The notes beneath the pieces were generated by a model. The model had not been told where the DNA came from. It saw nothing but the letters and a program-made list of their open reading frames with translations, and did not search any database. This document shows, in pieces, positions 22,858 through 56,851 of a stretch of 62,757 bases of DNA. A program made the position numbers and the translations under genes. Within the stretch, counting starts at the first letter, position 1; each line of letters starts with the position of its first letter. Location: the NCBI GenBank assembly GCA_000388065.2, contig KB932210.1, one strand, 5' to 3'. Source of the stretch: Fonticula alba ATCC 38817 (lineage: Eukaryota; Protista; Nucleariida).

Positions 22858-23420
22858 TGAAACGCTCGGACTGATTCACCGAGGCTTGTTCTCCGATATG
22901 GAGATCACGCCTCGGAAGAAAGCATTTCGTCTCGAGAGGTACAAGAAGGCAAGCGATGACAATAAAGCGCGCGCGGTCTTGTTGGGGGAAGCAAAAGTAT
23001 TTACATCAGAGACTACTGGCTTGGGGGGGAGAAAGCCAGGCCAAGGAGGCAATGACTATCCTTTCTAGGGTCGGAAGACATCACGTCTGAACTCCAGTCA
23101 AAAAGTATTTACATCAGAGACTACTGGCTTGGGGGGGAGAAAGCCAGGCCAAGGAGGCAATGACTATCCTTTCTAGGGTAGTCGTACATGGGAAAGAGGG
23201 CGCGGATGCCGTCCCTTATATAGGGGTTAGGCACATGGGAGAAGGAGCACCTTGCCCCTCTTCCCTGGCGCCGAGGGAGGAGGCGGCAGGGCGGGGCGAA
23301 GGTCTGTACACGGAGGCGCGGCTCTCCCCAAGAGGAGAGGAGAGCCGGGGATCCGACTTCTCAGATGTGGTCACGTGACAACCCGTGACCAATTCTGGGA
23401 TTTGGGCGGCAAAGGTTACA
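22858..23420 (-). mobile_element. Solo LTR, family C, copy 1 (563 bp), with 5-bp TSD CATAT; ends 34 bp upstream of tRNA-Glu
   Basis: Termini TGAAACGCTC...GGTTACA; CATAT at 22853-22857 and 23421-23425; minus-strand TATATAA at 23216-23222. Shares its termini and several internal motifs with 56168-56736. Confidence 0.88.
22993..23179. repeat. Exact 79-bp direct duplication inside the solo LTR
   Basis: 22993-23071 is identical to 23101-23179. Confidence 0.92.
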
Positions 23421-23454
23421 CATATTGGCCACCCAGCGGAAGCCCTTCATCTTC

Positions 23455-23527
23455 TCCCATATAGTCTAGGTGGTTAGGATACGTGGCTCTCACCCACGAG
23501 ACCCGGGTTCGAGTCCCGGTATGGGAA
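23455..23527 (+). tRNA. tRNA-Glu(CTC)
   Basis: Cloverleaf TCCCATA...TATGGGA-A; anticodon arm CGTGG-CTCTCAC-CCACG; TTCGAGT T-loop; T-run downstream. Confidence 0.96.
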
Positions 23528-23579
23528 TTCTTTTGGACCGGGGCCGTCCTTTTGATCGCCGAGCGAGCAAAATGGAAGC

Positions 23580-23653
23580 TGACCATGATGCGGCTCGAAC
23601 ACACAACCTCCTGATCCGTAGTCAGGTGCTCTATCCAATTGAGCTACACGGCC
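23580..23653 (-). tRNA. tRNA-Arg(ACG), copy 1
   Basis: GGCCGTG...CATGGTC-A; anticodon arm CCTGA-CTACGGA-TCAGG. Confidence 0.95.
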
Positions 23654-24792
23654 ATGCATGTCGGCCCTCCGCGAGGCTACATCTCGCTGTGCGCTTTGTG
23701 CCGATGTCGCCGGGTGGCCGGGCCCGCGCCGACCGGCCGACCCCCCCCCCCCCCCCCCCCCCCGGCACGCATCCCCACCCATGTCCCCGCTGCTGCCCGG
23801 GCCGAAGAAGCCCCCACACTCACGTCCCCACCGGGCAGGCATCCCGGCGCGATCCGCCGGCGGCGTATGTGCCCTGCTCGTGGGTGACGCCGAGGCCGCT
23901 GTCCTCCCGAGAGACCCGCCACCGGCTCGGGCGCCGGGCCCGGGGCCGGGGGACGCAGCACGGCGGGTCGCCTCGGCGCACCGGAGCCCCTGGTGCAGGT
24001 CTGCGCCCCCGAGCATGGGGGCCCGGTCTCCGCAAACACGCCGCCCCAGGAGGGCCCCACCCGGGCCGGCTCCCCTCGCCGTGGCGCCTGACAGCAAGCC
24101 CGCACCGCGGTTTCATTCGTGAAGCACAGACGTCAGCCTGGCTCAAGCCGGCCCCGGGGCGGGGCCTTCGCGCAGGCATACCGGCCCCCCGGGCGATGGC
24201 ACATCCTGCCGGGGGCCCCTGCTGAGGGACAGCCGGCCCGCCCGAGCCAGCGGACACGTTCCCCTGCCGGCTGGATCGCCCGGCGGCCCGCATGCATGGC
24301 CCGGCGTCGTGGTTGCCCCGCTCGTCGGCGGGGGCGGTCTTGCTCCGCAGGGGCCAGCGGCCACGGCGAGGCCCTTCTCGACCCTGGCACGCCATCTCGC
24401 CGAGCCAAGCACTCGAGGCGCCACGGCACCATATGAAAGCGCCCACGGGGGAGGCATGTCGGCGTCCAGGCAAGGGCCGTGGCCCGGGCCACGCTCCGGG
24501 ACAGGCATCCCTCAGGTGGTGGCCCCCTTCCCAGCCGGACGAGACGAGGCAGGGTCCTGCGCCGGGCATGGACGACTTTCGCCCCTTGGCACGATGCCAG
24601 GAGATGTGGACACACTTTTGTGCACATCGGTGGAGAGGGCGGCCCAAGTGCGCCAAATGCGCCAGCCAGGCGCGGGCCTGGGCGAATCTCCGCCGAGAGG
24701 CCGCCGCCCAGATCGAGCAGAGCACCGGCGAGCAGGCAAGCGGGGCACACACCAGGCGGCGTGCCAGGCGCGGTTGCTCTCGGCGGGCAACC

Positions 24793-24800
24793 TATAAAAG
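24793..24800 (+). promoter_or_regulatory. TATA box (TATAAAAG) at -37..-30 of tRNA-Ile
   Basis: Canonical TATA sequence at the TFIIIB position in otherwise GC-rich DNA. Confidence 0.65.
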
Positions 24801-24829
24801 TCCGGCGCCTCCCATACAGTCTAACCGGA

Positions 24830-24903
24830 GGCCCCATAGCTCAGTTGGTTAGAGCGTCGTGCTAATAACGCGAAGGTCGTCAGTTCGATCCTGGCTGGGG
24901 CCA
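24830..24903 (+). tRNA. tRNA-Ile(AAT)
   Basis: GGCCCCA...TGGGGCC-A; anticodon arm TCGTG-CTAATAA-CGCGA. Confidence 0.96.
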
Positions 24904-25102
24904 CTTCCTTTTGCCGCACCGACGCGCGGCATTGTTTTCCCCCCCCGGCTGCCAGCCGCGAGCAGGCAGAGGGGCACAATACGCCGGTGGCCGGGTCCGC
25001 TGGCTGGAGGCGTGCCCCTCTCCCGGGCACATTATTTTGGATGGCCCTGCGGGCGCGCGGGAGGGCGACATTTCGCCGGCAAAAACAAACAAAAGGAAGA
25101 TG

Positions 25103-25184
25103 CATCACCGGCAGGATTTGAACCTACGCGGGCAGAGCCCATCCGATTTCTAATCGGACTCCTTAACCACTCGGACACGGTGAT
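25103..25184 (-). tRNA. tRNA-Ser(AGA)
   Basis: ATCACCG...CGGTGAT-G; anticodon arm TCCGA-TTAGAAA-TCGGA; long variable arm GGGC-TCT-GCCC. Confidence 0.96.
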
Positions 25185-26872: not shown

Positions 26873-27077
26873 TCTCTTTTAAATATTTTGCATCACCCCC
26901 TGACCTTCCTCCCCCGTGCCCCTATCTCTTTTATTTCTCTCTCCCTCTTTCTCCGTGTTTCTCTGTCCCTTGTCCCCCTCCCCCGCCCCAACCCGGACCA
27001 CATCACACCTGCATCAACACAACCCACAGGCAGTCAATCAAAAGCTGTATTGGCAGATCGCGCGGACACTCGCCTCC

Positions 27078-30000
27078 TCAGGCCGCCACATGCTTCGGCG
27101 GGGCGGCGATGCAGTCCAGCATGCGCACGGCCCCCAGCGAATCCGAGGCGGTCAGGTTCAGCAGCACCGACCCCGGGGCCGGCAGCAGGGCGGCATCGCC
27201 AGCTTCCGCCGCCGCCGCCGCCGCCGCCGCGCCGAGGTTCGAGCTCAGCAGGGTCACCTGGTCCACCGACAGGTGGACCACCGGGGCCAGGCGCGAGCTG
27301 GCAAACATGCCCACCGGCTCCAGCCGCGGCATCAGGCCCAGGGGATCGTCGGTGGCCGCCGCCGCCGCCGCCGCGTGCAGCGGATCAACCACCCGCGACA
27401 CCCGCACAAACCCATCGGACCCGGCGGTCACCAGCAGGGCCGACCCCAGCACCGGCGGCAGGAACCCCCGCGGGATGTTGGCTTCGCTCAGCCGGCCCAG
27501 GTACAGCGAGTGCTGGCTGTTGGTGCTGCTCGCGGGGGACGGCACGCCCCCCACCGAGGGGGGACCCGCCGCCGCCGCCGCCGCCGGCAGCTGGGTGTAG
27601 TGCTCGGACAGCGACACCCCGCCCAGGAAGACGGCCTTCTCCCAGCACCGGCGCCCGGCCTCGCGCGACAGGTCCCGATGCTCGTCCGCCGACCAGGTGC
27701 CATTGCCACCGTCGGCCGCGGCGGTCTCGGCCAGGAAGGCCACCACCCCGGCCGCCGGCTCCAACGGCGGGGCCAGCTGCCCGGCGATGCGGGCCACCGC
27801 CGACGAGGCCGCCGCGCTGGAGGCCGCCGCGCCCGGGCCGAGCGGCGTGTCGGCCACCGACCCGGGCACCACGCGCCCGGCCGCCAGCAGCGCCTCCGGC
27901 CGAATGACAGCCACCCCTTGGACCAGGGCCGCGCCATCGTGCGGCCGCCACACGGCCGCCAGCTGGTACACCGGGCGACCGGGGGTCAGCCGCCCGGTCA
28001 GCTGCTCATGCAGCCGGCCACCCAGCCCAGGGCCCAGCAGCAGCGGCGGCAGCCGGGCCGACGGCCGCAAAAGGGCCACCCGCCCGGCCGCCGTGCCGAG
28101 CACCACACTCGGCGGCATCAGCGCCGACACCGAGTCCGGCCGGTGGTCCCCCAGCGTCAGGGCCACCGAGTGCACCTGCGCCGAGAACCCATACCGGCGG
28201 ACATCCCCCGGCACCAGGCACCGGTCCAGCAGGGCCACCTCCTGCACCCAGAGCCCGAAGTGCTTGTCGGCCGCCTCGGCCGCCGGGGCCCAGGCGCCCG
28301 GCACCTCGGCCGCCGGCCGCATCGCAAACAGCACCGCCGACCCCGAGGAAAAGACCACCGCCGCATAGACAAGGCCCACCCCGCCGGCATGGGCCAGCAG
28401 GGCCGCCGCGCGGACCGGCCGCTGGCCATACCGCGTGCTGGCCGGCAGGGCGGCCCCCAGCGAGCCGCCCGGCGGCCCATCGGCCGACCCGCCATCGCCC
28501 AGCGGCCGGCTCGACTGCAGCCACAGCCGGTGCTGGTTGGCCCGCTCGATGGCCCGCGTCTCGCGCGATCCCAGCACATCCAGGGCCCGGGTGTGCGTCG
28601 AGTCCAGGTACACCAGGTGCAGGCGGCTGCCCGAGCAGGCCAGCGCCACCGGCAGGCCGCCGCCCATGGCCACCGGCAGGTCCACCGGGCACAGGGCCGT
28701 CACCATGGCATCGCCATGCTCCAGCATCTGCAGCAGGACCCACCGCGGCCCGTCGCCGGTGCCCGGGTCCGACTCCTCGGTCTCCAGGTCCCCGGGCGAC
28801 CCGTGCACCAGGGCCCACAGGGCCAGGTGACGGCTCGCGTGCGAGGTCAACACCAGGCTGTACGACGGCTGGCAGGCGGGGCACCCGGCCGAGGCGAAGG
28901 ACTGCCCCGGCAGGGCGACCATCGCCTGCACCGGGCCCAGGCCGCCCTCCGGCGCCGGCGCGGTCACCGCCCCCGACAGGGCCGGCAACAGCTCCTCGCC
29001 GGCCAGCGCCCGGAACGAGAAGAGCTTGGCCGTGTCCAGGTCCGCTGGCTGGCCAACCCGCCGGAGGCGCCGGGCCAGCACGGCCCCGGTCCCGGCATCG
29101 CGCACCGTCCACCGGACCACCCCGCCCAGGCACCGGTCCACCGGCAGGTAGGGATCCGCGAAGGCCGACACCGTGGCATGCTCCTCCACCAGGAACCCGC
29201 CAGCTGGCAGGTGGTGATACGGGCTCGCCTGCCAGCAGCCCGACTGCCGGCAGGCCATGACAGGCATCGCACGCGCCCGGTGCGCCACCGTGGCCGAGCA
29301 CAGCACCGAGTGGCCAAGGGCCGCGCTCGACCCGGGCAGCGACTTCGGGCTGGCCCCGGCCCGGGGGGCCTCGGCCGATGGCCCGAGAAGGGCCGCCGTC
29401 TCGACCGGCGGCAGGCCGCCCGCCGCCGCGGCCGCCGCCGTGGCCGGGCCATTCGGCACCGGGCCCCAAAACACCGACCGCCCATCGACGCCCGTGGTCA
29501 GGAAGGCCCCCAGGGCCCCGGTCGGCGAGTGGATCGCCACAATCGGCCCCGTGTGCAGCCGGGCCTTCAGCGGCACGGCCGACGACGACGATCCGCCCGC
29601 CTGGCGCGCCACCGCCGCCTGCGCCATTTCCAACGACGGCATGGCAAATGGCCGCCACACCCGCAGGGCGCCATCGCCCTCGGTCCCGACGAACACCAGG
29701 CCCCCGGGCATGAGGCTGCCCTCGGCGGTGCCCAGCGCATCGGCCAGGGCACACACGCGCCCGGCCGCCGCCCCGCCCGGCGCCGGCAGCATCGTCAGCG
29801 GCGACAGCTCCGACGACAGGACCTGCACCGCCGACCCGTGGGCCACCAGCCGGTGGCCCACGGCCAGATGCAGCACCGGCGCATCGCCATCGCTACGCGA
29901 CGCCAGGCACTGGCCCAGCGGCCCGGCACCGGCGGCTGTGCCGCCGGACCGGCCGCCACCGGCGCCGGCCGTCCCCATGCCGACCGGCAGATGCGCCTCG

Positions 30001-33000
30001 GCCAGGGCACCCAGCGACAGGGTTCGCTCATGCGACCCGTCGTACAGGCTCCCGGCCATGTCCACCGTGACCAGGGCCGCGTCGGCCGGGCGCCCGGGCC
30101 GGGCGCCCGGCCCGGCCGCCAGCAGGGCCACCCCGGCCAGCGACGAATCCGACACCGGCACATGCCGGACCCAGGAGGCGAAATTGTGCCGCGTCGCCTT
30201 CAGGCCCCGGTCCACCGGCAGCAGGGTGCACACCCCGCCGGTGGTCCCCAGCGCCAGGACCCGCCGCACCGGGCACAGGGCCACCGCCATGTAGCGCCCA
30301 TGCTCCGGCACGAAGTCCACCTGGAGCTCCGGCCCGGCCGGCGCCACCGGGCTGTAAAAGTGCAACTGGTCAATGCACTTGCAGGAGCGCGACACCGCCG
30401 GCCGCGGCGCATGGCCAAACACCGCGGCCGACCCATCGCTCAGGACCAGCGCCAGCACCGGGACATTCGGGTCCCCCACGGCCGAGGCCATGGTGCCGGC
30501 CCCGGCCGAGGCCACCACCTCCAGCCCGGTCTCGATGAAGGCCGAGGCCACGGCCTCCCGGCTGGCATGCGTCTTGCCGGGGATGCTGACAAAGCGCCGA
30601 ACCGCGCAGAACCCCAGCCCCTGGCCCGAGTCCACGGCCCACACCTCCAGCAGGCCATTGGCCAGGACCGCCAGGAAGAAGTGCAGCGTCGGCACCGGCT
30701 CCGGGTCCTTGGCCCGGCGCGCGTTGGGCTGCATCAGCTGCCCGGCGGCCCCGGGCGTCAGCGCATGCAGCCCGACCACGGCCCCGCGCAGGGGCGCCAC
30801 CGACCCGCCGGTCATCGGGTCCGTCACGCCGGACGCCGCGCTGGCCGCGTCACGCGGCGCCTGCCCCGGCTCCAGCTCATTGGCCGCCATCTGGTTCATG
30901 AAGATGTTGGCCGTTTCCCCGAGCGGGCTCTCATGGCTCAGGCGACTGCTGTGCCAGCCGCCCTCCTCGGTGGCCCGGACAAGGTAGAGCGTCCCGGCCC
31001 GGGTGCCGGCCACCAGCACCGGCCTCGAGGAGGAGGAGGAGGAGGAGGAGGAGGAGGAGAAGCCGCCACTGTCGCCGGGCTGCTCGACATCCAGTCGCAA
31101 GAGCACCGTCGCCGGGGACTTGAGCGACGTGGCGAACTCCACCGTGCCCAGGGGCCCGGGGATCGGCAACGACGGCGCCGCAAAGTCCCGGAAGACCCCG
31201 GGATCCGTGCTGCCGCCAGACACGCCGCCCGGCATCACGGCCCCGCCGCCGCGGCTGTACACCATCCGGCCGGACCCGAGGGATGCCCGCCGGCCGCCGG
31301 TCGGCGCCGGCGCACCCCGCAGCGACACCCCGGCCATGGTGCTCAGCCCGGGCACGCGGAGAAGCGACCCGTCACGCAGGGCAAAGGCCAGGCTGCCCCA
31401 GGCGCAGAACCGCGCCCCGGCAATCGGGCTCAGCGGCACGGTCGAGCTGAAGCACAAGGCCCGGTACACGGTCTTCTCGAAGTCCCGCGACAGGAACGAC
31501 CAGCGAGGGGCCCCGGGCAGCCGGGAAAACAGCGACACGCTGCCATCCGCATGCACCGCCAGGAAGTACAACTCCGACGGGTGCAGGGCCACCGAGAGGA
31601 CCGCCTTGCGGAAGCTCACGGACCAGGTGGAAGTCTGCGCACGGGTGTCGGGCCAGCACAGGCACGATGGGGGAAGTGGTCAGCAGGGAGCGATCGAACA
31701 AGCGAGCTGAGCAGAGAGGGCGAGCTGAGCAGACAAAGCGAGCTGAGCAGACAAAGCGAGCTGAGCAGACAAAGCGAGCTGAGCAGAGAAGGCGAGCCAA
31801 GCAGGAAGCGAAGGCAGCAAAAAGGGCGTACCATCGTGCGCAGGTCCAGGAAGTGCAGCGAGCCCCAGGTGCCGACCAGGGCCCCGGGCGACCGCCGCAG
31901 CGGGACCATGCAGCTCACCGGCGGCGGGAGGTTGTTGTCGGCCACCTGGAGCAGCGACCGTGGCGGCGGCCCGGAGGGGGTCCACACCGTGGCGGCGGCC
32001 GCGGCCGTCGGGGCGTCGTCCCCGCCGCCGGCCGCCGCCCCGGCGTCATCATCATCGCCGCGCGCCCCGTCGGCCCGGCCCCCAAGCAGCGACCGCGACA
32101 AATGCTGCAAGGCCCCGGCACACAGGTCCGCCAGGGGCCAATGGAACAGCCGCCCATCGAGGCCGGCCGTCAGGAGCCCCGCACCGGGCCCATCCCCAGT
32201 CGGGCCATCCGCATGCAGCAGCAGCCCGCTGACCGCCAGCGAGTGGGCCTGGAAGGCGCTCAGCAGCCGGCAGTCGAAGGTGTTGCTCGGGCTGCCGGCC
32301 GAGTGGGCCCCGGACAGGGAGCCGCCGGGCCCGGACCCGCGTCGGAGAACACCGCCCCGGTGCAGGGCCTCCCCGCCGCCCCGGGGCCCGGACAGCACGT
32401 GCTCCGGCACCGGCGCATACACCAGCGACACCGAGCCGTCCTTGGTGCCGACGGCCAGGACGACACCCTCAAAGTGCCGGCCCATGGCCGCCTGCATGGC
32501 CGACGAGGTCAGCGATGCCAGGGACCCGAGCTTGGAGGCGCCGCCGGCCGCCGCCGCCGCCGCCATCGACGAGTTGGCCAGGCTGGAGGCCACCACCAGC
32601 GACCGGAAGGCCCCCAGCGGCAGGACGCACACCGCCGAGGGGGCCAGCGTGCCGGACCCCATCAGCCGGAAGCGCGACAGCGTCAGCCCGGTCTCCAGGC
32701 AGAGGATCTCGATGGAGAGCTGCGCCCGGCGGTGGCCATCGCGCGAGGTGGGGAGCAGTCAGTACAACAAGGCCAGGGAAAAAAAAAAAAGAAGGACATC
32801 CCACACACACACGCAGGCGCCCGGACCCGGCGCCAGGCACGTACATCGCTGTAGCAGAGGATGCTGATGCGCGCGGCGCCCGGGGCCGCGCTCGCGGCCA
32901 GCAGCTGCGCCGCCGCCGACGAGGGAGCCCCCGCATCATGCCCCGGCGCCGAGGCGAGCGCCACCGGGAACTGCGGATCCCCGGTGGCCGGCGGCCAGAC

Positions 33001-36000
33001 CGCCGAGCACGTCACCGACGCCGGGCTCGAGGACAGAACCAGCGGCCGGCCGCCGCGGGCCGCCGCCGGGGCCGCCCGGTCGGCCTCCGCCAGGGCGCGC
33101 GGCGCGAACCACGCCCGGCCAGCGCGCAGCCGGCCAATCAGCCGGCCAAAGCCCGCGGACCAGGCCGACCGCGGCAAATTCGACAGACACAGCTGGAACA
33201 CCAGCCCCGGTTCGGCCAGCAGAGCCGGCACAAAGGGCCGCACCACCGCCCCATACAGCACCGGCAGCCGGGCCGCATAGGAAGTCGGCTGCCCGGGCCC
33301 GAGCCCGGCCTCCACCCGCCGGACCCCGGCCGCATACTGCACCAGCAGGAAGGGCAGCAGCCGGGCCACGGTGGCACATGCAAAGAACCCGGCATCCCCG
33401 AGCAGGCGCCAGGCCCCGGCATGGGCCCCGGCCGCGGTCAGATGCGGCAGCGCCAGGCGCAAGGCCCGCGCATCCAGCGCCGCCCCCGGCACATCGAAGG
33501 CATCCACCGTGGCCAAGGCCCGCCGGAGGAAGTGCCCGCCCAGCAGCCGGTGGGCCGCGCGGCGCTGGCGCTCCCGCGGCATGTACCGCTGCGCCAGCAC
33601 ATGCACCACGGTGACCGGCGCGAAGGACAGCTGGAACAGCGGGTCCGGCCCATCGACCACCCGCACAAACAGCCCGCGCAGGGTCGACGACAGCATCGAC
33701 CACACGGCGTACGGCAGCCGGCCGGTGGCGCTGGCGCCGCCGACGCCGCCGACGCCGACGCCGGCACCCGCCGGCACCGGCAGCAGCAGCGCCCCCGCGC
33801 GCTGGCACAGCCCCGGGAAGGCCCCGCCCAGCAGGGCCAGCATCTCCGACTCGTACACCCCCCCGGGGGACACGCACAGCAGGCTGATCGCCAGCCCGAG
33901 CAGCTGCTCGCCCAGCGACCCGGCGGCCGCCCCGTCCGAGGGCCCGGCCAGCCCGGCCAGCGAGTCGCGCATGCTGGCCTCGGCCCGGCGCAGGGCCCAA
34001 TCCACCAGCTGCCACAGGCCGGCCTCCGGCATGGACCGGACCACGGCCGTCAGGCGCCCGGGCAGGTCCGCCTGGGCGATGCCCGCCCGCCGGGCCGCCA
34101 CCAGGGCACCCGGCCCGGCCCCGCCGGCCGCATCCAAAAACGAGAAGGACCCCCGCTGGAGGAGCTCATCGCACGCCAGCGCCAGGAACAGCGGCGACCC
34201 GGCACCGGGCTTGGCCACCAGCAGGTCCAGGTCCGACGGCTCGGCCCCGGCATCGCCCGGCCCCAGGCGCTTGTAGAAGCGCCCCAAGCGCCGGGCCACG
34301 AAGTCCGCCCGCTCGGCCGGCGCCAGCTCCCCGACGAAGAGCACCGCCCCGGCCAGCAGGACACTGGTCAGGTCGGTGGCCCGCTGCAGCTCGCCGATCA
34401 TCTGGCTCACCTGCGACGCGGACATCGAGGCGCTGGGGTTGCCGCCGGCAGGCCCGGCCGAGGCCGCGCCCCCGGCCCCGCCGAGGACCAGCGACCGGCT
34501 GGTCTCCAAGTGCCGCTGCGAGAAGACCGGATGCCAGTGGGAAATGGACGCCAGCGCCCGGCCGAGCGGCGGACCCGTCGGGCTTTGCCCCGGTCCGGCC
34601 CCCGGGCCCGGGCCCTGCGCATGGAAGGCGAAGGCCGCCTGCCCGGCGCCGGCCATGCGCCCGCGATCGGCCACCGCACCGAGCCCGGTCACGATCGCGG
34701 CCGCCGGCGCGCCGCCCACAATGGACGGGCTCAGCACCGGGCCCGGCGCCGTGCAGGTGATCACCACCCGCACGCGATCCGTATTCAGGGCCACCACCCA
34801 CCGGAGCCAATCGGTGGACAGCCCGCCGGACGGCGGCGGCGGCGGCGACGACGCCGAGGCCGAGGGCCCCGCATCGCCCTCGCCCTCGCCCGGCGCCGCG
34901 ACCTCCGGCACATCGAACACATGGTCCAGGCCGTCCAGCACCAGGACCAGCCGCCGGGACTGGGCCACGGTCTCCACCTGCCGCGACACCAGGTGCACGC
35001 TCTCCCCGAGGGTGCTATAGGTGTCGGTGAGGGCCACCTGCCGGAGGTCCTCCGCGTGCAGGAACTGCGGGAAGGCCCGGACCAGCGATTGCGACAGGCG
35101 CCGGAGGATCAGATGCGGCTCGGCCGCCTGCAGGGAGGCCCCGCAAAAGTGCGTCCACACGAAGGGCCGGTCCGCGGCGTCGGCCGGCCCATGCTCCGGG
35201 CCCCCGGTCGAGGGGTCCTCATCCGCCAGCAGCAGCGACCCCTCCCGGTGCCCGGCCAGCAGCAAGTGCGACAGGAGGGCCGTCTTGCCACTGCCCGAGG
35301 GCCCGGTCAGCAGGAGGGGATTCATCGGCGGCATCAGCGGCGCGCCAGCCACCGCAGGGCCGGATGCCACCGGCTGCGACTGCTCGGCCGCCGAATGGAA
35401 GTGCACAAAGGCCCCCAGCCGGGCATGCGCATCCGGCCGGCTGACAAACAGCCCGCCCTCGGCCAGGGCATTCAGCGACAGGAGCCCCCGGTGAAGGGCC
35501 CCCTCGGAGGCGGCGGCCTCCATGGCGCCCCCCCCGGCCAGCGCGTCCACCGCCTGCAGCAGCGGCAGCTCCTCGGCCGGGGCCGCGTCAAAGTGCCCGG
35601 CCAGGGCCGGGTCCGTGCGCAGGAGCTCCCACAGCCGGTCGACCAGCGCCCGGCGGAAGTGCCCGAACAGCGCCGCCGCCGAGGCCGCCATCTGCCCGGT
35701 CTTGGCCGAGTAGGCCCACACATCGGAGAAGTTGTACTCGAAGGCGGTCACGCGGTCCGGGGCCGCGGCCGCGGCCTGCGCCACCGCCGAGCGCAAGTGC
35801 GCCACGCGGCTGGCCGCGTCGAACCCGCCGCCGCCGGCCGCCGCGGTCGTGGCAATCGCCGCCGCCGCCGCCGCCGCCACCTCGCTCATGGAGCAGGCCC
35901 CCGGCTGGAAGGCCCCGCGCACGGCCGCCGGCAGCTGGTCCAGCACCGGCTGCGGCACGGCCGACCGCAGGGCAAACACCGCGCGCGCCGGCTCCGGCAC

Positions 36001-39000: not shown

Positions 39001-39897
39001 CGGGAAACAGGCAGCCGGAAGCACGCACCGCGAGGAATCCGCCTTGCTGTAGTAGTTCGGGTTCATGAAGAGACTGCTCGAGGCCGACAGGATGAAGTCG
39101 TACTTGAGCTTGTCCATGGCCAGCGAGGAGGAGGACGGGGGAACCGCCCCGACGCCCGGGGCCGCCTTCGGCCCGACACCCCCGGCCCCGGAGAAGGGCG
39201 ACGCGTCGCCGGCCGTCCGCAGGAGGGCCTGCTCGCCGGCCGAGAGCGGGCGCTCGGCAAACAGCCCGCCCACGGGCAGCAGCTCGGCCGGAGCAAAGCA
39301 GCCCTCACGGGTGACCGGCTCCTGGGCCTGCTCCAGCTGGAGCAGCAGATCGTCCCCGGCGTCCGGGGGCGAGGTGCGCTGCTGGCCAGGCTGCTGGTGC
39401 GCCAGCACCGGGGCACCGGCGGCGGGGCCCGACGCCGGCATGGTCGGGGTGACGCCCGGCCGCGCGGGCACACCCACGGTGGCCGCCGGCCGCGGGCTCA
39501 GCACGCTCGGCGATGCCGCCGCGCCACCGGGCCGGTCGCCGATGATCGACGATGACGACGACAGGACCGACGGGCTGGCCCGGCTGGAGGACAGCAGCGA
39601 GGACCCGGACAGCAGCGAAGACCCGGACAGCAGCGAAGACCCGGACAGCAGCGAGGACCCGGACAGCAGCGAGGACCCGGACAGCAGCGAAGAGCCGCCC
39701 GGCGCAGGGCCACCCTGAGTGGAGCCCGACAGCAGCGACGACGTCAGGGGGCTGACATTGGCCCCGGTCGACGACGGGCTCAGCAGCCGGTTGACCGTGG
39801 ACGCGTGGCCGGTGGTCGACGACGACGACAGGAGCGAGCTCCGGCCGGCGGTCGGCTGCCGGGTGCCATGAGCCGAGGAGGAAGACGAGAAGGACAT
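27078..39897 (-). CDS. TEP1: Telomerase/vault-associated protein 1 homologue (TROVE + DUF4062 + NACHT + WD40), about 4,072 aa; exons 39897-39029, 38749-32845, 32719-31832, 31634-27078
   Basis: TROVE start DPEFVLRLALYVRLELFVRSTANYLLA and LPFTALLRNL; DUF4062 WRTVRIFVSSTFADMAVERE...DLRWGV; Walker A GPSGSGKT; Walker B LVLVLDGLD; C-terminal WD-like repeats (TAGLDGRLFHW, TGVDGRSVFW, TAGSDGFVRVS). Three GT-AG introns keep the frame (12,219 nt total). Confidence 0.88.
31702..31797. repeat. 18-bp minisatellite (GCGAGCTGAGCAGACAAA), about 5 copies, inside TEP1 intron 3
   Basis: Tandem units visible within intron 31635-31831. Confidence 0.9.
38757..38835. repeat. (TG)n-rich microsatellite in TEP1 intron 1
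   Basis: GTGTGTGGATGTGT runs inside intron 38750-39028. Confidence 0.85.
39589..39692 (-). repeat. Coding 18-bp repeat, about 6 tandem copies, encoding SSLLSG in the TEP1 N-terminus
   Basis: GGACAGCAGCGA(G/A)GACCC units on the plus strand, with extra dispersed SSLLS copies upstream in the same exon. Confidence 0.9.
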
Positions 39898-41999: not shown

Positions 42000-42183
42000 T
42001 GTAACATACATCACATGATGTAGTTAAAGATTCGGGGGTATATAAGCTTCATCCTTCCAGTGTATTCCCCAGACTTTACGCCTCAGTCTGCGGATTCTTT
42101 CTTTTAATATACCAAATCCGCCTCTCTCAGCCCCAAGGTCTCTGAGATCACCCCCTCATCTTTCACTCGGCATAACCGGTTCA
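42000..42183 (+). mobile_element. Solo LTR, family A (184 bp), with 5-bp TSD TTTGC
   Basis: TGTAAC...GGTTCA; TTTGC at 41995-41999 and 42184-42188; TATATAA at 42039-42045; homologous to the LTR-like flanks of the element at about 49657-53525. Confidence 0.85.
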
Positions 42184-42261
42184 TTTGCGATGCCGGTCAC
42201 GCGGAATACACGGGCCCCATCGGCCCATGCCGGATCACGCGGCGACGAGAAGCGCCCGCTG

Positions 42262-48356: not shown

Positions 48357-48385
48357 GGCGATGGTAAACCAGCGCCCGCCCAGTC

Positions 48386-48463: not shown

Positions 48464-49660
48464 GAGCGCAATGGTCTTGTTGGGTCGGTGGCGTGGGATC
48501 CTTCTCCGCCCTGGTGTAACCTCGATCCCCGGCACCAACTTCTTCTGCTGCTACTATTGCTCCTTCCCGTGGCCCCCGGGAGGAGAGGCGGGCGGCGCCC
48601 GGTGGGGGGATTCTCTCCCTCCCCGTGCCGAGGCCAGGTCCCCCTCCCTCTCTCGACCACAACCCGTGTGTACGTGTGCCTCTCGGGCTCTCTCTCCGCG
48701 CACACACGGGGAACGCCCCCCCTTGTCTCGTGAGAGGGGGGGAGGGGGAGGATGGGTGCGGTCAGCCGAGAGAGAGAGCGTCTCCTCCCGGTGCCGCGCC
48801 GTCGTCCTCCCACATCAACAACCCCCCCCTCCCGGGGGCGGGGCCCGCCACAGAAAGGGCCCGCGTGTGCTCGCGTCTTCCGGCTCGCGCCGTCCGCGGG
48901 AGAGTGCAAGACGGCGACACGCCCGAGCCCGGCCCTTCGCCCCGGGTGTGCCAGCCCGACCCCCGGCGGGGGATCCCGCGCTTAAATTCCCATCTTATCT
49001 GCGGCGGTCCCTGGGCTGGCACAGCCCCCAACACACCGCAACCGCTCCCCGCCCTCTCCCCCTCTTTTTGGTGGCCCGTGAAGAGGAGCCACAGGGCGGC
49101 GGTCCGGCGGCACCTCCGGCTGCGCCCCCGAAGGCAAGGTACATATATGACCTCCGGGATTTGATCCCCCGAGCGCAATGGTCTAGTTGGGTTCGGCGTG
49201 CTGGGATTCTTCTTATTGGTTCTAGTTTCAATTCCGGCCGCCTCCTCTTCTTATTATCGATACATAGCTGCCTCATGGCCTCTGGGGCCTCGCCCGTGGT
49301 GTGTGCCGGATATCGGCACGCTTCCCACCCGGGCAGGTTCCCTGGCCCGAGACACACCCGTTCTCCCGGGCGGGAGATGTAATCCCACCTGGGGAACACT
49401 CCGCTGAACAGACATCTGTTGAGTGACTTCTTACCCCTGGGGGTTGGGCCCCATTCCGGAGAGGCCCGCAGGCACAAATGTGCCCGCGGGCTGGCCCCTC
49501 CCCCAACCCGTGCCCGCCCATCATGCGATCCCGCAAATCCTGAAATATTCCATCTTCTTATGTGCGGGGTCGCGGGCGGGCACAAACCCCAACAGACTGC
49601 AATCGCTCCCTCTCTCTTTTTTCCCCGGCCGCCCGAGAGGCACACGGGGGCGCAGCCCCC
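48464..49660 (+). repeat. Nest of diverged duplicated segments (about 48464-48560 with 49171-49270; about 48975-49090 with 49540-49650), probably LTR or Pol III-unit remnants
   Basis: GAGCGCAATGGTCT(T/A)GTTGGGT occurs twice; CCATCTT..TGCGG..GGCACA..CCCCAACA.AC.GCAA.CGCTCCC occurs twice. Confidence 0.6.
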
Positions 49661-49942
49661 GCCGCCCCCGCCACCACATCGCGTGCAGCTCGCCCCCTCA
49701 GATCCGGCTGTATATATGAGCCCCCCACCCTCCCGGTGTATATTGCCGGGCCTTCCGCCCCGGTCTGCGGATTCCTCTCCCTGTGATAGCACACACCCAA
49801 TCCACCTTTTTTCTTTTCCTCCCGGCCACAAGGTCTCCGGGATCGCCCCCCCCCCCCCGCGTCTTTCACCTCGGCATAGCCGGCTCATCGTCCGCAGACT
49901 GCTTTGACCCCTTCCCCTCCCCCCCCCCCCCCCACCGCTACC

Positions 49943-52267
49943 ATGGATGTCAACCAGGATCTGGCCTTACAAACCCAGCATCCCCCCCCTCAGCCCCCCC
50001 TATTTTATCGTCCCCCTCCTCCCCCAACCGCCCCTCCTCAACAAAACCCACACAATCCACACTACAGCCCCCTGGCGGGATACCCACAGCCAGCCCCAGC
50101 CCCCCGCCCCACCCACCACTGGCCCTCGCCCGGCTTCCAAGGAAGCACCATCGTAAACACCGCCCCAGCCCAGGCATGGTCTCATCGCTGGTTCAGCCAC
50201 ACCTCTCAATTCAAAGCCAACTCCCTCCCCCACTGGATCACCGGTGACCAGGCCTGGGGCGCATGCTTCGACCCGCTCTCCGACGATCTGGAGACCATTC
50301 TCAGCATCGGCTTCGCCCCCCACGACTCCTCGGTCAAGCCCGAGCTCCACTTCGCCTCTCCGCCCACGAGCACCTCCAACATCACCTTCCATTTCCGCGT
50401 CAGACATGCCCTATCCCTCTTCCTCAATTCCCAGATCTCGGCGCCCAACTTCCTGGAACTCATCTTCCACTCGGATCTCGACCCGCACTTTCCCCCGGAC
50501 GGCATTCCCGCGCTCCTTCGCAGGTACCTGCTCATAACGGTCGATTTCACCCAGGCCATCAATCACCTGTTCCACAGGCTCCCGCACCGCCCGACGGTTC
50601 TCCTCAAGGCCCGAGACGTCGCCACTGCGCTCATGAAATTGGGCTACAGCCCCGACCCACACGTCTTCTGGGCCTTCTTCCGTACTCTGGTCCCCCCGAC
50701 AGACACGGCCACCTTCGACAGCGCCATCCGCAGCGTCTACTTCTCCATCTTCATGAGAAGCCAATCTCCCCTCCGCCTGGACTTCAAGGCAATCACCCCT
50801 CCCCACCAATCAGTCTCCTTCAACACCACGCCCGGCTCATCTTCATCCTTCGCCCCTCTTCTTGGCAGCACCGCCTTCTCCCCCTTCGACTCCTCCCATC
50901 GACGGCCTCGCCAACCCCGGCGCAAAAACACCCACGCCCCCCCGCAAAGCAAAGCCCATGCCCACCACAACCCCAACCCCGTGTCACACCCACCCACCAT
51001 CAGCTCCACATCCCGCCCCCCCATGGACACGCTCGCCTCTCCGGTCCACTCGCCCCCTGCACGGCCCTTTTTCAACAGGTCATTTGTTTCGCTCGAGACC
51101 TCCTTCGACAAGGGGGTATTCTTCAGACTTGGCACGGCGGCCGCCACCTCCATCATGCCAAGTTGGATGGTCACGAAGTTCAACATGCCCACCAAGCCCT
51201 CCCCCCTTCATCTTGCCCTGCCCGATGGCTCGCGAGCCTTCTCATCCCGCACAGTGGTCTTCTCCATCATCCACAACAATCGCTCCATCCCGGTGGAGGC
51301 GCCGGTGGTCGACGTCTCATTCACATACATCCTCCTGGGCAATGACGTCGTGCACCTGCTGCTCCCCCAACTCGAGCAAGCATTCGGTGACCTCGACAAC
51401 TCCGAGCAATTCCCCGACATCCCACTTGCCACTCCCTCCCCTCGGGATCTCCTGCCCCTGGACCGCACCCACTCGTTCGAGCGCCACGCTGGCCCGACCT
51501 CCATCAAAAGCTCGGCCCCCCATGCATCCTGGCTGAGCGAATTGCAAGCCTTCGAAGATCGCCCCGACTTCCCCCTCATGAGGGGCCACCAGCCATTCAA
51601 ACTCAACCTCATCAAGCAAGTCCAAATCCCGCGCAAAAAAAACCCCACCAGGTCAGCCGAAGCCGTCCGAATCATTGACGGCCAAATTGCGACCCTCCTC
51701 CAGCAGGGGGTCATCGTGCAGGTGGAATTCTCGGCCCATGCCGCGGATTCCCTCATGGTAGCCCGGCCGGCCGGCGGACACCGAGTGGTCTTCGATTACT
51801 CCTTCCTGAACAAATTCCTGGAAGCCCCCTCGGGCCAGCTGGGAGTGCCGGGCGATCTCTTCGCGCGAATCTCCCGGGCCCGCTTCTTCACCACCCTGGA
51901 CCTGGCCAACGCCCTCAATCACATTGGCATCGACAAAAGCAGCCAGCACATCCTCTCCTTCAGGCACCGAGGCAAATGCTACAACTTCACGCGTCTCCCC
52001 GCTGGCCTTGACAGCGCAGCACACATTTTTTCCAACGCACTCGGCCACGTCATTCAAAAGCACAACGCATACTCGGCCTCCTACGTTGATGACATCGTCA
52101 TTTTCTCCAACTCCGAGGAGGAGCACATCACACACGTCCTGTCTGTCCTGCGGACTCTCAACCAAGCCAACGTCAAACTGCGCCCATCCAAATGCCAGTT
52201 CTTTTCCTCCAGCGTCACCTTCCTCGGCGTCACAATTGGCCACAACCACTTCGAAGTGGCATCCTAG
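49943..52267 (+). CDS. Gag-like + aspartic-protease-like (catalytic Asp lost) + reverse transcriptase ORF
   Basis: Protease-like LGTAA (canonical LDTGA) and ILLGND; RT motifs HRVVFDYSFLN, LDLANALNHI, RLPAGL, YVDD, KCQF, FLG. ATG is in an ACCATGG context. Confidence 0.88.
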   Translation: MDVNQDLALQTQHPPPQPPLFYRPPPPPTAPPQQNPHNPHYSPLAGYPQPAPAPRPTHHWPSPGFQGSTIVNTAPAQAWSHRWFSHTSQFKANSLPHWITGDQAWGACFDPLSDDLETILSIGFAPHDSSVKPELHFASPPTSTSNITFHFRVRHALSLFLNSQISAPNFLELIFHSDLDPHFPPDGIPALLRRYLLITVDFTQAINHLFHRLPHRPTVLLKARDVATALMKLGYSPDPHVFWAFFRTLVPPTDTATFDSAIRSVYFSIFMRSQSPLRLDFKAITPPHQSVSFNTTPGSSSSFAPLLGSTAFSPFDSSHRRPRQPRRKNTHAPPQSKAHAHHNPNPVSHPPTISSTSRPPMDTLASPVHSPPARPFFNRSFVSLETSFDKGVFFRLGTAAATSIMPSWMVTKFNMPTKPSPLHLALPDGSRAFSSRTVVFSIIHNNRSIPVEAPVVDVSFTYILLGNDVVHLLLPQLEQAFGDLDNSEQFPDIPLATPSPRDLLPLDRTHSFERHAGPTSIKSSAPHASWLSELQAFEDRPDFPLMRGHQPFKLNLIKQVQIPRKKNPTRSAEAVRIIDGQIATLLQQGVIVQVEFSAHAADSLMVARPAGGHRVVFDYSFLNKFLEAPSGQLGVPGDLFARISRARFFTTLDLANALNHIGIDKSSQHILSFRHRGKCYNFTRLPAGLDSAAHIFSNALGHVIQKHNAYSASYVDDIVIFSNSEEEHITHVLSVLRTLNQANVKLRPSKCQFFSSSVTFLGVTIGHNHFEVAS

Positions 52268-53300
52268 GCCCCCAGCGACATCCGTGACTTTTCCCCCCCC
52301 CCCCTCCCCCTCCCCGGCATCCCCAAGCCGCGCAGCTTCGCCGGTTTGGCCAACTTCGCCCATCGCTGGCTCTCCCCCCTCTCCGAACGACTCATCCCAC
52401 TCACCACACGCACCAGTGACACCCATGGCGACAGCGGCCAAAGCAGCCCCATCGCCAAAGCCACGCCACTCCCAGCTCTTGACCTCGATCTACTCCTCTC
52501 CATCTGCTCGGACGCCCCTCGCACAGGCACCGGAGCGGGGCTCTCTTCCCACTGGCTTCCCCGTGCAGGTGGCCCCGAAACCTCCCCCAACCCCCCAATG
52601 ACCACGCCTCCTCCAGACACCCTGCCCCGATTGCCCTCTTCGCGAAAGTCCTCACACAGGCGCAAACCCGCTACCCAGTACATGGACGTGGAGCCCTGGC
52701 CATTGTTTCGGCTCTCGCACACTGAGGACGCCCACTGCGCGCTGGCAGCTCTATTATCACCTTCACCGACGGCGAATCCATCTCCCAATGGCGATCCCGC
52801 CCTCCTCTCAATGACCACCACCTACGTTGGAAGCTCCCCATCGGCTCCCTCCCGATCCCACACCCTCCCACATCGAAGGCGAAGATGGCCCCCCATGACC
52901 CTTTCAAATGGCCCGGAAGCTCTTTGCCACACCGCCTCCACGAGAAGATCCCGTCCATACAGCACGCCGGCAATGGATCCCCGACAAGAGCCTCGGGCTT
53001 CTCGCACGCTTGCAAACGTCCTCCCCTCCGAGCATCTCACCAGGAGATCATGCTGCAATAGACCTGACCGAAAGCCCGCTCTCCAACAATCGGCCTGCCC
53101 CAGGTCCGAGAAACTCCCCCAAGGTCGCTGACGTCAAGGGCACTGCCACCCTACTTGAATCTGGCATGCCTGAGCGCCGATCCCGGCCCCTCTCGGCCTC
53201 CCAAGTAGAGCCGGCCCCCAATCCAGCCGACGCACTCCAACTTCCCTCATTCTCCAGTTCCGCCTTCGCCCCTCGTGTTTCACTCCGCTCAGCCCTTCCC
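52268..53300 (+). pseudogene. Degenerate RT thumb/connection and RNase H remnant after an in-frame TAG
   Basis: The same frame continues ...PKPRSFAGLANFAHRWL (canonical LRSFLGLxNYYRRFI) and ICSDAPRTGTGAGL (canonical TDASxxGxGAVL). NPADAL appears later in another frame. Confidence 0.7.
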
Positions 53301-53955
53301 CGGGCGCCCGAGGCACCCCGGTAGCCCCCGCACCACACCACATGGTGTGTGGCTCTCGGATCCGGGCCGATAATTGAGCTCCATCCTCCCGGTGTACTGC
53401 CGGGCCTTCCGCTTCGGTCTGCCAACTCCTTCCTCATAATATACCAAACCCGCCTCTCTCCCTCTCTCTCGGTCATAAGGTCTCCCAGATCGCCCCTCAT
53501 CTTTCGCTCCGGCATGACCGGCTCACACACAAAGAGAAAACAATCTGGCCCTCAATCGCCGGCCTGCCGCCCGAGAGCGAGAGAGAGCGCGAGTCAGGCA
53601 CACACTGGCTTCGGGTCCTCGCCCCACGCGCCGGTCCGCAGGGGGGCACCGACGCGCCGGGCGTCTGCCGCTGGCGCCCGCATGAACCCCCTGGGCCGGC
53701 ACACCCCGGCCGCCGATGGCCACCGATGGTTTTGGATGCCACGCACACACCAGGGGGGGCTCTCCGAGGTGGCCCGCCGGTGGACCGCGCGCGCGCCGAC
53801 GCCGCTGGCTATGCCGCCGCGCTGGTCGCTGCTGGTCACTGCTGGTCGCCGGGCCACTCTCGGCTCTTCGCCCCGTCGCGGTGGGAGCCCAGCGGGCAGC
53901 ACGCCCCGAGGCCGAAGGCACAAAACCCGGGATCCACCCTGCGCTCCCATCATCT

Positions 53956-54624: not shown

Positions 54625-54703
54625 TGATTGGAGTGGGACTCGAACCCACGAGGTTTCCCACTAGTACCTGAAACTAGCGCCTTAACCACTCGGCCATCCA
54701 ACC
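54625..54703 (-). tRNA. tRNA-Leu(CAG), copy 3
   Basis: Reverse complement identical to copy 1. Confidence 0.95.
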
Positions 54704-55095
54704 TGCTGGTCGACCAAGGGCCCACCCGGGGCTTTTGACCGGAGCGACGTCCGGCCCCGGCACGCGTCCCAGCACCGCACCGACCGCCACACTGCGCGGG
54801 CACCCATGGAAGCCGCGCGCCCGCGTCGCCCAAAGCACCCCCCCCCACCGCCGCATCCCCGCCCTCCTCTCGGCGGCCTCTCTCACACCCGGAGCGACAC
54901 CCTGCTCCCGGCCGCTTGTCAGGCCCCCCCCCCCCCGCGCTTCGGCGCCGAGGCTGCCTGGAGGCTGGCCGGTTTTTCCCCTGTGGCGGCGCCTCTCCCC
55001 CCGCCCCGGGATCCCCCCCTCTCCTCGGCGGACAGATCTCTCGCGGGCGGGGGCGACGCGCGGGCGCGGCCGCCGGGCGCGCAAAAAGAACGGTG

Positions 55096-55174
55096 TGATT
55101 GGAGTGGGACTCGAACCCACGAGGTTTCCCACTAGTACCTGAAACTAGCGCCTTAACCACTCGGCCATCCAACC
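55096..55174 (-). tRNA. tRNA-Leu(CAG), copy 4
   Basis: Reverse complement identical to copy 1. Confidence 0.95.
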
Positions 55175-55448
55175 AGATGATGTCCCTCCACCCACCAGAT
55201 GCCTTCATGAGGCCCGGTGCTTTTGCCGCGCGCAGAGAAAGAAGCCCCGCCGCCATGCACCACCAAAGCGAAGCCCGGCTCCCGGGGGGAAAGACACACG
55301 CCGGCGGGACGGTTGCCCCGGGCGCGCAGGAAAAAAAAGACCGCCCGCACATGCCCACCTCTCTCGCGCCACGGAGGAGCAGCCCCGAGCACACGCCGCA
55401 AGAAGCAGAGGGCCGCGTGGAGGAGGGACCGAGCAAAAGGAAAGGAAT

Positions 55449-55521
55449 AGCCCACTGTGGGGCTCGAACCCACGACCCTGGGATTAAGAGTCCCATGCTC
55501 TACCAACTGAGCTAAACAGGC
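55449..55521 (-). tRNA. tRNA-Lys(CTT)
   Basis: GCCTGTT...AGTGGGC-T; anticodon arm TGGGA-CTCTTAA-TCCCA. Confidence 0.93.
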
Positions 55522-56122
55522 TATGCCCTATGCATCAAGGGGGAGCCATATCAAGGACCCCGTTTCAGCCACACCGGGCCCGCGGCCCATGATCCTCCAC
55601 GCCCCACGAGGGCCCGCGCCCGGAAGATGCCCGAGCGGGCGCCCCCCCCCCACCGGAGGGCCGCCAGGGGCCGAAAGAAGGAAAAAAAAAACCACGGCAC
55701 AGCACCAAAACACAGAGGGCCGGCTGGCCCGCGTCTGACCAACGGCCCGCGGTGCCGACGCCGAGACAGTCCAACATGACCCCCCTTCATTGGCCCGGGT
55801 CGCCGGGGAAAGCCGACACCCCGGCGGCCCGGCCGGGAGGAGCCCCGGGCCATGCCCAAGGAAACGCGGGAACATCCCCTCGCCCGGGTGGTGGCGATCG
55901 TGCGTCGCCCCCCCGGGAAGCACGCCCGAGCAGGGCGGCAGGGGCCTGGCTCGCGCCATGCGGGCGCAGAGGAGGCTGGCCGCAGCCCCGGGCTGTTCAC
56001 GGTGGAGGGCAAGAGAATACAGCGGTCGGAAAAATGCGGGGTGGCGCGAAGGCCGGGGGCAGGCGGACGGCACACGCCTCTCCAGCGGCGCCCCGAGGAG
56101 AGAGCCATGCCCGAAAAGGCCC

Positions 56123-56756
56123 GGCCAATATATGTGCGGCCCGGCCAATATATGTGCGGCCCGGCCATGAAACGCTCCGGTTCTGGTATGTGATTCTGGG
56201 GGACCGGTGAGGGCCTTCCCTGAACCACCCAGAGCGTTCCGTCCCGAGAGGGTCACCACTCGGACATGAATACAACAACAAAAGAAGGGAAAGCTGGTGA
56301 TCTGCGTCTTTATGGGGATTACATCAGGGACTAGGTCACACCGCTCCAGAGGGAACGACGTACGGAGACAGGACTATAGGAAATCAAACCTCCGTAAGAG
56401 AGAATGACTATCCTTCAAGGTGCTGAGTCCTTGGAGGGGAGGCAGGAACGGGGGCCCCTTATATAGGGTGCCCAGAAAAGGGGGAATACATGGGAATACA
56501 TGGGAATTGAGAGAGAATGGGTGGCGTCGCCCGAACGACGACGCCAGCACCCCCCAACGGGGAAGTGCAGGTCGACTAGTGGACCTCGTTGCTATAAGAT
56601 CACGTGAAGGTCATGACCAGATCTAGCAGGGATGTGGCAGCAGGGGGAAAACAGAGCAGGGCGAGGTGAGGCAGGCGCGGAGGAGGTGAGCGGAGCGAAG
56701 TTCCGACGCAATGTCGGAGGTGACATTATGGTTACAGGCCAATATATGTGCGGCCC
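56123..56756 (+). repeat. 20-bp tandem repeat GGCCAATATATGTGCGGCCC x3; the third unit is split by the solo LTR
   Basis: Units at 56123-56142 and 56143-56162, then GGCCA, the LTR, and a complete unit at 56737-56756. Confidence 0.92.
56168..56736 (-). mobile_element. Solo LTR, family C, copy 2 (569 bp), with 5-bp TSD GGCCA; ends 36 bp upstream of tRNA-Leu(AAG)
   Basis: TGAAACGCTC...GGTTACA; GGCCA at 56163-56167 and 56737-56741; minus-strand TATATAA at 56459-56465. AATGACTATCCTT, TTACATCAG.GACTA and TCACGTGA are shared with copy 1. Confidence 0.9.
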
Positions 56757-56772
56757 GGCCCTAGGACATCGA

Positions 56773-56851
56773 GGTTGGATGGCCGAGTGGTTAAGGCGCC
56801 AGTTTAAGGCACTGGTGGGAAACCGCGTGGGTTCGAGTCCCACTCCAATCA
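56773..56851 (+). tRNA. tRNA-Leu(AAG)
   Basis: 79 nt; anticodon arm CCAGT-TTAAGGC-ACTGG; otherwise nearly identical to Leu(CAG). Confidence 0.95.

Follow-up and report, generated by a model that had tools for sequence, protein, structure and literature searches.

A Ty3/gypsy LTR retrotransposon family of Fonticula alba with probable position-specific integration upstream of tRNA genes

Targeting tRNA genes is a textbook case of convergent 'safe-site' integration in compact genomes, and it has been described both for budding and fission yeasts and for dictyostelid amoebae. Among the yeast elements, Ty3 uses a tRNA primer, and Tf1 targets promoters of RNA polymerase (Pol) II and carries a chromodomain. 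Fonticula alba belongs to the sister lineage of fungi, in which an aggregative, slime-mould-like life evolved independently. In a stretch of 62,757 bp from contig KB932210.1 of this organism (strain ATCC 38817, assembly GCA_000388065.2; the whole stretch is called the window hereafter), a preliminary description made from the sequence alone had reported two solo long terminal repeats (LTRs) shortly upstream of tRNA genes. Both LTRs belong to one Ty3/gypsy LTR retrotransposon family with two sister subfamilies, el1 and el2, and it is very likely that this family integrates position-specifically upstream of tRNA genes. For Ty3, Tj1, Ylt1, Tyl3 and Tyl6, insertion 1-10 bp upstream of the start site is listed in a review of 2018, and the interval of 32-43 bp used by the Fonticula family is further upstream than that of any position-specific LTR element in that list (PMC5911963).

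By published description rather than by sequence, Tj1 of Schizosaccharomyces japonicus appears to be the closest known analogue in behaviour. It is likewise a Ty3/gypsy LTR element with target-site duplications (TSDs) of 5 bp, its primer site complements the 5' end of its own RNA (self-priming), as appears to be so in the Fonticula family, it is found with an orientation bias upstream of TATA-bearing tRNA genes, and both hosts are Holomycota (PMC4600332). Tj1 differs in that its insertions fall between TATA box and gene, 1-10 bp upstream of the start site or 5-11 bp from the mature 5' end (PMC4600332), whereas the Fonticula family uses the upstream edge of a TATA-like patch, points mostly away from the tRNA, opposite to Tj1, and has one reading frame and no polypurine tract. 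Ty3 of Saccharomyces cerevisiae shares the order reverse transcriptase (RT)-RNase H-integrase (IN) and the position-specific insertion at Pol III genes, which it achieves via TFIIIB, but its insertions are found at TFIIIB's downstream side, 1-4 bp upstream of the start site (PMC8632968). It has a vestigial chromodomain which contacts Brf1, while the Fonticula integrase ends 24 residues past its SH3-like domain. DGLT-A of dictyostelids is also a Ty3/gypsy element with a single Gag-Pol frame, inserted upstream of tRNA genes in either orientation in the compact genome of an aggregative amoeba; it differs by its distance of ~15 bp (13-33 bp), by the TGG signature of its primer site and by its amoebozoan host, which is unrelated to Fonticula (PMC5006619, PMC5911963). 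TRE5-A of Dictyostelium discoideum is alike in pointing opposite to the tRNA, and the protein of its open reading frame (ORF) 1 binds TFIIIB subunits; it is, however, a non-LTR element using target-primed reverse transcription, with neither integrase nor LTRs (PMC5911963). Finally, Tf1 of Schizosaccharomyces pombe is the prototype of self-priming, in which the primer site complements the first bases of the element's own transcript (PMC4600332, PMC5006619), as it would in the Fonticula family, where cleavage of the primer by RNase H is putative.

No paper linking Fonticula to tRNA-targeted LTR elements was found in the literature searched. A preprint of 2026 on this compact genome, poor in transposable elements (TEs), mentions the repeat content of 0.36% alone (bioRxiv 10.64898/2026.06.24.734286). 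The family is apparently a further, undescribed case of Pol III-gene targeting, and it adds one which is young, polymorphic between strains and apparently transcribed, and which has an intact coding copy.

Direct reading of the window agreed with the two elements and their perfect TSDs as first described, and ARAGORN and Rfam both returned the tRNA genes at the reported gaps of 34 and 36 bp. The insertions and their targets are the following.

22858-23420, minus strand: solo LTR of subfamily el1, 563 bp (the canonical 455 bp plus a private internal duplication of 108 bp)
22853-22857: TSD CATAT, distal copy, from the window sequence
23421-23425: TSD CATAT, tRNA-proximal copy, at -34 to -30 of tRNA-Glu, within the AT-rich patch
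23455-23527, plus strand: tRNA-Glu(CTC), targeted gene (ARAGORN, Rfam), 34 bp from the el1 LTR
56168-56736, minus strand: solo LTR of subfamily el2a, 569 bp
56163-56167: TSD GGCCA, distal copy, from the window sequence
56737-56741: TSD GGCCA, proximal copy, with the AT patch ATATATG directly after it
56773-56851, plus strand: tRNA-Leu(AAG), targeted gene (ARAGORN, Rfam), 36 bp from the el2a LTR

On the plus strand both LTRs start with TGAAACGCTC and end with GGTTACA, and the sense strand of the el1 LTR reads TGTAACC...GCGTTTCA. Besides these termini they have in common a TATATAAGG box, a CACGTGA box and a AATGACTATCCTT motif; elsewhere they are ~53% alike, in line with the strong divergence noticed before. 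Since a full-length copy reads TGTAACC...GCGTTTCA in the coding sense, both window LTRs lie on the minus strand with U3 beside the tRNA. Their promoters thus face away from the tRNA gene, and the sense strand obtained from this copy, on contig C42, bears out the direction proposed initially. The window el1 LTR is 98-99% identical to five other complete copies. Its relatives measure 455 bp, and its own tandem duplication (22993-23071 / 23101-23179) is skipped in contigs of other el1 copies, both from the run of the source organism and from a related strain; the duplication doubles the self-primer motif and the TGTAAAT signal discussed below. For the window el2a LTR, five other copies with 98-99% identity were found, and among them are LTRs belonging to two elements that are full-length or gapped.

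As a separate observation, the target of the window el2a LTR is a 20-bp tandem repeat, CCCGGCCAATATATGTGCGG (56123-56162 and 56738-56760), of about three units when the LTR is left out. The repeat contains the AT patch of tRNA-Leu(AAG), and the TATA-like element of that gene is triplicated.

The genome of the window itself, an assembly of 31.3 Mb in 214 contigs with a GC content of 67%, was searched for further copies. With the el1 and el2 repeats as BLAST queries, 26 and 28 matches were obtained, respectively. The fetched loci were merged into 30 regions, on which BLAST and ARAGORN were repeated and each junction was read. The tRNA calls came from ARAGORN and Rfam in the window and from ARAGORN on the flanks of the genomic copies. 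About 38 LTR copies were found across the genome. The sharp peak of distances which had been predicted from the two window copies was clearly detected, as 22 of the ~33 assessable insertions lie 32-43 bp before a tRNA gene, each at a different gene. The binomial tail is 7.5e-69, for a chance per insertion of 3.4e-4 obtained from 658 tRNA candidates (~658 at most, a rough first-look count) and a generous window of 16 bp. The distance depends on the subfamily, with 32-34 bp in el1 (7/7) and 35-43 bp in the 15 el2 copies.

el1, young (98-99% alike): gaps to the mature tRNA 5' end of 34, 34, 34, 34, 32, 32 and 34 bp, at tRNA genes for Glu, Thr, Val, Asp, Arg, Pro and Leu
el2a, young: gaps of 36, 41, 40, 35, 42 and 41 bp
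el2b (99% alike among themselves, 83% to el2a): gaps of 36, 42 and 36 bp
Six older el2 copies: gaps of 35-43 bp

Perfect 5-bp TSDs were retained by most copies, and each of them differs from the others. At four places (C10:470.8-471.9 kb, C2:1294.3-1295.3 kb, C4:1027.1-1028.2 kb and C2:353.6-358.0 kb), insertions are stacked behind a younger LTR at one tRNA gene, with a spacing that fits successive insertions at the same place. A reading of the el1-el2 tandems as a single composite LTR was rejected, because the partners are unlike in age and identity and the gap arithmetic corresponds to successive hits. The U3 end is beside the tRNA in 18 of 23 measured copies (p = 0.011), among them all seven of el1.

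Several points weigh against position-specific targeting as a strict rule. Besides the rough tRNA denominator, the census covers the best-scoring candidates, and many N gaps lie within or beside elements; several LTR fragments run into assembly gaps, so that their distance to a tRNA is not assignable. For four or five copies, neither a tRNA nor another Rfam Pol III gene was present within 1.5 kb, namely for a solo LTR at C19:139291-139855, which is complete, and for fragments (C6:1369602, C4:24558 and C8:26680), and no 5S, U6 or 7SL gene reached the Rfam gathering scores beside these copies. Orientation is biased, not fixed: five el2 copies are reversed, including a full-length or gapped element at tRNA-Lys on C2. 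The single orientation expected in the preliminary description therefore holds as a bias and fails as a rule.

A clustering of this kind could also arise from random integration followed by survival solely beside tRNA genes in a gene-dense genome, and the compact, TE-poor genome with its 0.36% of repeats would suit such a filter (bioRxiv 10.64898/2026.06.24.734286). Selection cannot, however, yield a window of 12 bp, TSDs abutting the AT patch or repeated hits at one gene, and the young copies, 98-99% alike, are all at tRNA genes. Random integration with selective survival is thus considered very improbable.

The tRNA genes of the window are clustered and duplicated, a situation in which repeats might simply have been copied along with tRNA genes by segmental duplication without being LTRs at all. 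This possibility was confronted with sequencing data of a related strain. In the DNA run X9, whose flanks are a few per cent different, one contig joins 22852 to 23421 and omits exactly 568 bp (22853-23420), corresponding to the LTR and one TSD copy. This is the empty site of the window el1 insertion, and it refutes segmental duplication at this place. In addition, the copies stand at different tRNA species, in different flanks and between different 5-bp TSDs, and the full-length element encodes pol. A duplication of tRNA-plus-repeat units is hardly credible on this evidence, and the insertions are independent, as had been claimed for the two in the window. The same run also contains flanking sequence of the el1 insertion next to tRNA-Leu on C5, indicating that some insertions are common to both strains and that the window el1 insertion is newer. 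The latter insertion is recent.

The full-length element whose recovery had been called for at the outset was found on contig C42 (6502 bp), between the last 51 bp of one el1 LTR at the contig start and the first 94 bp of the following LTR at its end. A single intact ORF (184-6216 of L055) encodes a polyprotein of 2011 aa comprising Gag, protease (PR), RT, RNase H and IN. The expected residues were located in it: the protease motif DTGA at 871, YVDD at 1195, RNase H at ~1315-1460, the HHCC zinc module at 1627 and the D,D,E triad at 1694/1755/1788-1792. Pfam recognised RVT_1, RNase H, Integrase_H2C2 and rve, in the Ty3/gypsy order PR-RT-RNaseH-IN, and the best solved relative is Ty3 Gag-Pol (7q5b, E = 8e-64). 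The best database matches of the homologue search were only 33-36% identical and belong to generic animal Ty3/gypsy proteins, with no near relative, and an exact look-up of the polyprotein in the protein collection gave no entry. A second full-length copy, of el2 type and degenerate, is located at C3:3259470-3264166 with the TSD ACGAA; the first 240 residues of its RT are 73% identical to el1. The LTR hallmarks are present in the family, with TGTAACC...TTTCA ends (TG..CA) and perfect 5-bp TSDs in most copies. All these data confirmed that el1 and el2 are sister subfamilies of one Ty3/gypsy LTR retrotransposon family. A quick RT-RNaseH tree, from a search whose careful version is unfinished and with several long branches, separated nine Fonticula copies from 45 database hits by a branch with 100% support, which is taken as a hint only.

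A chromodomain (PF00385) was not detected in the integrase even at E = 5, so that the family falls outside the chromoviruses by this criterion. The AlphaFold model of the integrase (pLDDT 79) displays an N-terminal domain, the catalytic core, a long helix and an SH3-like C-terminal domain, with a low-confidence insert between core and C-terminal domain and a disordered tail of 24 residues after the SH3-like domain.

As to what positions the insertions, the preliminary description had pointed to an AT-rich patch near -30. In 45 unoccupied tRNA genes, the AT fraction was indeed found to be 0.58-0.78 at -36 to -30, against ~0.3 around it (the patch extends over -36 to -29). Fission-yeast tRNA genes likewise have a TATA-like upstream element (PMC4600332). 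When the el2 copies were aligned on the insertion point, the patch appeared at +5 to +11 after the LTR, directly after the 5-bp TSD, while in el1 copies the TSD is itself AT-rich and overlaps the patch. The el2 copies are 35-43 bp from the tRNA, yet their distance to the patch is nearly constant, and the patch is always retained between LTR and tRNA.

The TSD thus abuts or overlaps the AT patch, and integrases generally favour bent or AT-rich DNA. The DNA itself might accordingly aim the integration, as an AT-rich, bendable patch in a genome of 67% GC, with no Pol III factor involved. Three observations speak against it. All placed copies are at tRNA genes, with none of them detected at a Pol II TATA box or another AT-rich site; the distance of el1 to the tRNA is constant at 32-34 bp; and one el1 copy sits exactly 34 bp away in GC-rich tRNA sequence. 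This copy is a solo LTR at C9:34677-35132 (L002 1501-1956) with the TSD GGTCT, upstream of tRNA-Thr(AGT). It splits the neighbouring tRNA gene, which occupies the site 34 bp before tRNA-Thr, at a place without AT patch; in an intact Gly-Thr tRNA pair, at C6:38446-38594, the two genes are 5 bp apart. In the C9 copy, position and distance, and not the local sequence, set the site, and direct aiming by DNA is regarded as improbable. The annotation of repeats in the Fonticula genome should reckon with LTRs beside tRNA genes, which may also split tRNA gene models.

The near-constant distance of el2 to the patch argues for a factor which sits on the patch and positions the intasome. From these sequence data we infer a tether between the intasome and the Pol III pre-initiation complex, with TFIIIB on the AT patch as the most likely partner. 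The intasome would dock at TFIIIB's upstream face, the one opposite to that used by Ty3 and Tj1, and integration at this side would spare the tRNA promoter as well as nearby protein genes. As the integrase is devoid of a chromodomain, the Brf1-binding 'ruler' of the Ty3 type is absent. Insertion across the TATA-like box from Ty3 and Tj1, in combination with the lack of that ruler, offers a test of how differently one Pol III pre-initiation complex may be read by integrases.

Ty1 integrase is tethered to AC40, a subunit of Pol III, and in the Fonticula family the tether could similarly be TFIIIC or a Pol III subunit instead of TFIIIB. In el1 the insertions keep a fixed distance from the tRNA body even at a site that has no patch, which would fit such a contact, and the orientation bias of Ty3 depends on TFIIIC (PMC8632968). 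The structure prediction did not decide the matter either: the complex of the C-terminal part of IN (linker, SH3-like domain and tail) with the F. alba TBP core scored 0.63, but one unrelated control 0.46, which gives no verdict and counts against a firm assignment to TFIIIB. On the other hand, the el2 copies keep their distance to the patch while that to the tRNA varies over 35-43 bp, pointing to a factor on the patch, and tethering of the Ty1 type yields a broad, nucleosome-phased window and not one of 12 bp (PMC5911963). A tether to TFIIIC or to Pol III is thus judged unlikely, though it is the most serious competitor of TFIIIB.

The TBP gene on contig C2 is 100% identical to the NCBI protein named for F. 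alba. As assembled (C2:3504264-3504951; L081 1035-2295, minus strand), ~49 codons (DFNDFTIQ...LIFRMH) of this gene are present in duplicate and in different frames; the NCBI protein (P0125, 221 aa) continues through them without a break. The probable cause is a local duplication in the assembly or a repeat flanked by introns.

The priming of reverse transcription was examined with the help of the following elements of the window LTRs.

23216-23222, minus strand: TATATAA box of the el1 LTR, sense position 199
23164-23179, minus strand: putative el1 self-primer ACCCTAGAAAGGATAG, sense 242-257, complementing 16 nt after the 5' LTR of the full-length copy
23056-23071, minus strand: second copy of the ACCCTAGAAAGGATAG self-primer, from the internal duplication
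23108-23113, minus strand: TGTAAA, likely poly(A) site and R/U5 border, at the end of a contig from a probable RNA run (contig evidence only)
56459-56465, minus strand: TATATAA box of the el2 LTR, sense position 272
56408-56421, minus strand: putative el2 self-primer ACCTTGAAGGATAG, sense 316-329, complementing CTATCCTTCAAGGT, the primer site in the full-length el2 copy of contig C3

The 5' LTR is followed by CTATCCTTTCTAGGGT in el1 and by CTATCCTTCAAGGT in el2, and each of these sequences perfectly complements a motif within the LTR of its subfamily, over 16 nt in el1 (ACCCTAGAAAGGATAG) and over 14 nt in el2 (ACCTTGAAGGATAG). A TGG after the LTR is absent; the primer site starts with CTATCC and is no complement of a tRNA 3' end. 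Counted from its start, the motif is 43-44 nt downstream of TATATAA, and the probable poly(A) site follows ~66 nt after that start. In the minimum-energy folds of R-U5 and primer binding site (PBS), 16/16 (el1) and 14/14 (el2) motif bases were paired with the primer site. The self-primer motifs of the two subfamilies are unlike (TTTCTAGGGT vs TTCAAGGT), and LTR and primer site co-vary. Because of this co-variation, the family appears to be self-priming like Tf1 and Tj1. In such a scheme, 14-16 nt at the 5' end of R, located ~43 nt beyond the TATA box, would fold back on the complementary site directly after the 5' LTR, and the fold-back of the transcript's own 5' end would prime reverse transcription in the Tf1 manner. 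A drawback of the self-priming model is its dependence on a putative transcription start. With the el family, a possible association of self-priming with Pol III targeting in Holomycota can be examined.

Before the 3' LTR, where the sequence reads CTCTTCACCCCACCAA in el1 and TTTTCAAAACACCAA in el2, a polypurine tract is absent; such a tract is usual in Ty3/gypsy elements, but not strictly defining. Instead, both subfamilies display a perfect hairpin of 17-18 bp located 10-11 nt before the 3' LTR (z = -5.9 and -7.3).

L055:6347-6397 (contig C42): hairpin of el1
L056:1650-1702 (contig C3), minus strand: hairpin of el2

Comparison of the stems by eye revealed that 3/3 positions differing between the subfamilies are compensated on the other arm. 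The hairpin may replace the polypurine tract when the plus strand is primed, or else act as a signal for packaging or for the 3' end. Taken together, an independent origin of Pol III targeting in the Fonticula lineage, a chromodomain-less IN on the upstream face of TFIIIB (the Bdp1/TBP side) as a mirror of Ty3 and Tj1, a fold-back replacing the tRNA primer and a hairpin replacing the polypurine tract form a tentative scenario, which has somewhat less than an even chance of being right in all its parts.

Sequencing runs of the source organism were also considered. Runs X5-X8 contain 87-96% of the element's words. In X5, a contig of 3860 nt begins in the interior, continues in the 3' LTR as far as sense ~313 and ends there at TGTAAA, while flanks, tRNA genes and U5 are uncovered, a pattern that fits a polyadenylated transcript ending at TGTAAA. 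To the detriment of this interpretation, the RNA status of X5-X8 is a software guess, and contigs cannot fix transcript ends. The family is young and probably still active, and seems to be transcribed.

A soil metagenome of 2022 (run X10) contained 67% of the element's words, and its flank contigs differ by ~3% from the window. A Fonticula relative with the el family was therefore present in that soil sample.

Other gypsy-like sequences were encountered as well. Two old, degenerate elements of another family are located in the tRNA cluster of the window, at 42001-46240 and 49400-53525; integrase is encoded in a frame at 42430-46092 and RT in one at 49904-52267. Their LTR pairs are weak (42291-42411/46118-46240 and 49621-49887/53296-53525), and one LTR starts with TGTAAC at 42001. 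These LTRs contain GTCTGCGGATTC, the complement of which (TCCGCAGAC, GAATCGCAG) follows the LTR, suggesting that the old elements are self-priming too. They are not at the -35 position and lie 423 bp from tRNA-Asp. A further gypsy family was found at C14:390293-396733 and ten other places; its intact frame comprises ~2055 aa with 35% identity in Pol, and pieces of its LTR occur at ~11 places. No tRNA was found at the internal loci of other gypsy families (on C14, C11, C1 and others).

Between the two tRNA clusters of the window, two very long ORFs with 72-75% GC were noted, at 26916-32867 (1983 aa) and 32515-39555 (2346 aa).

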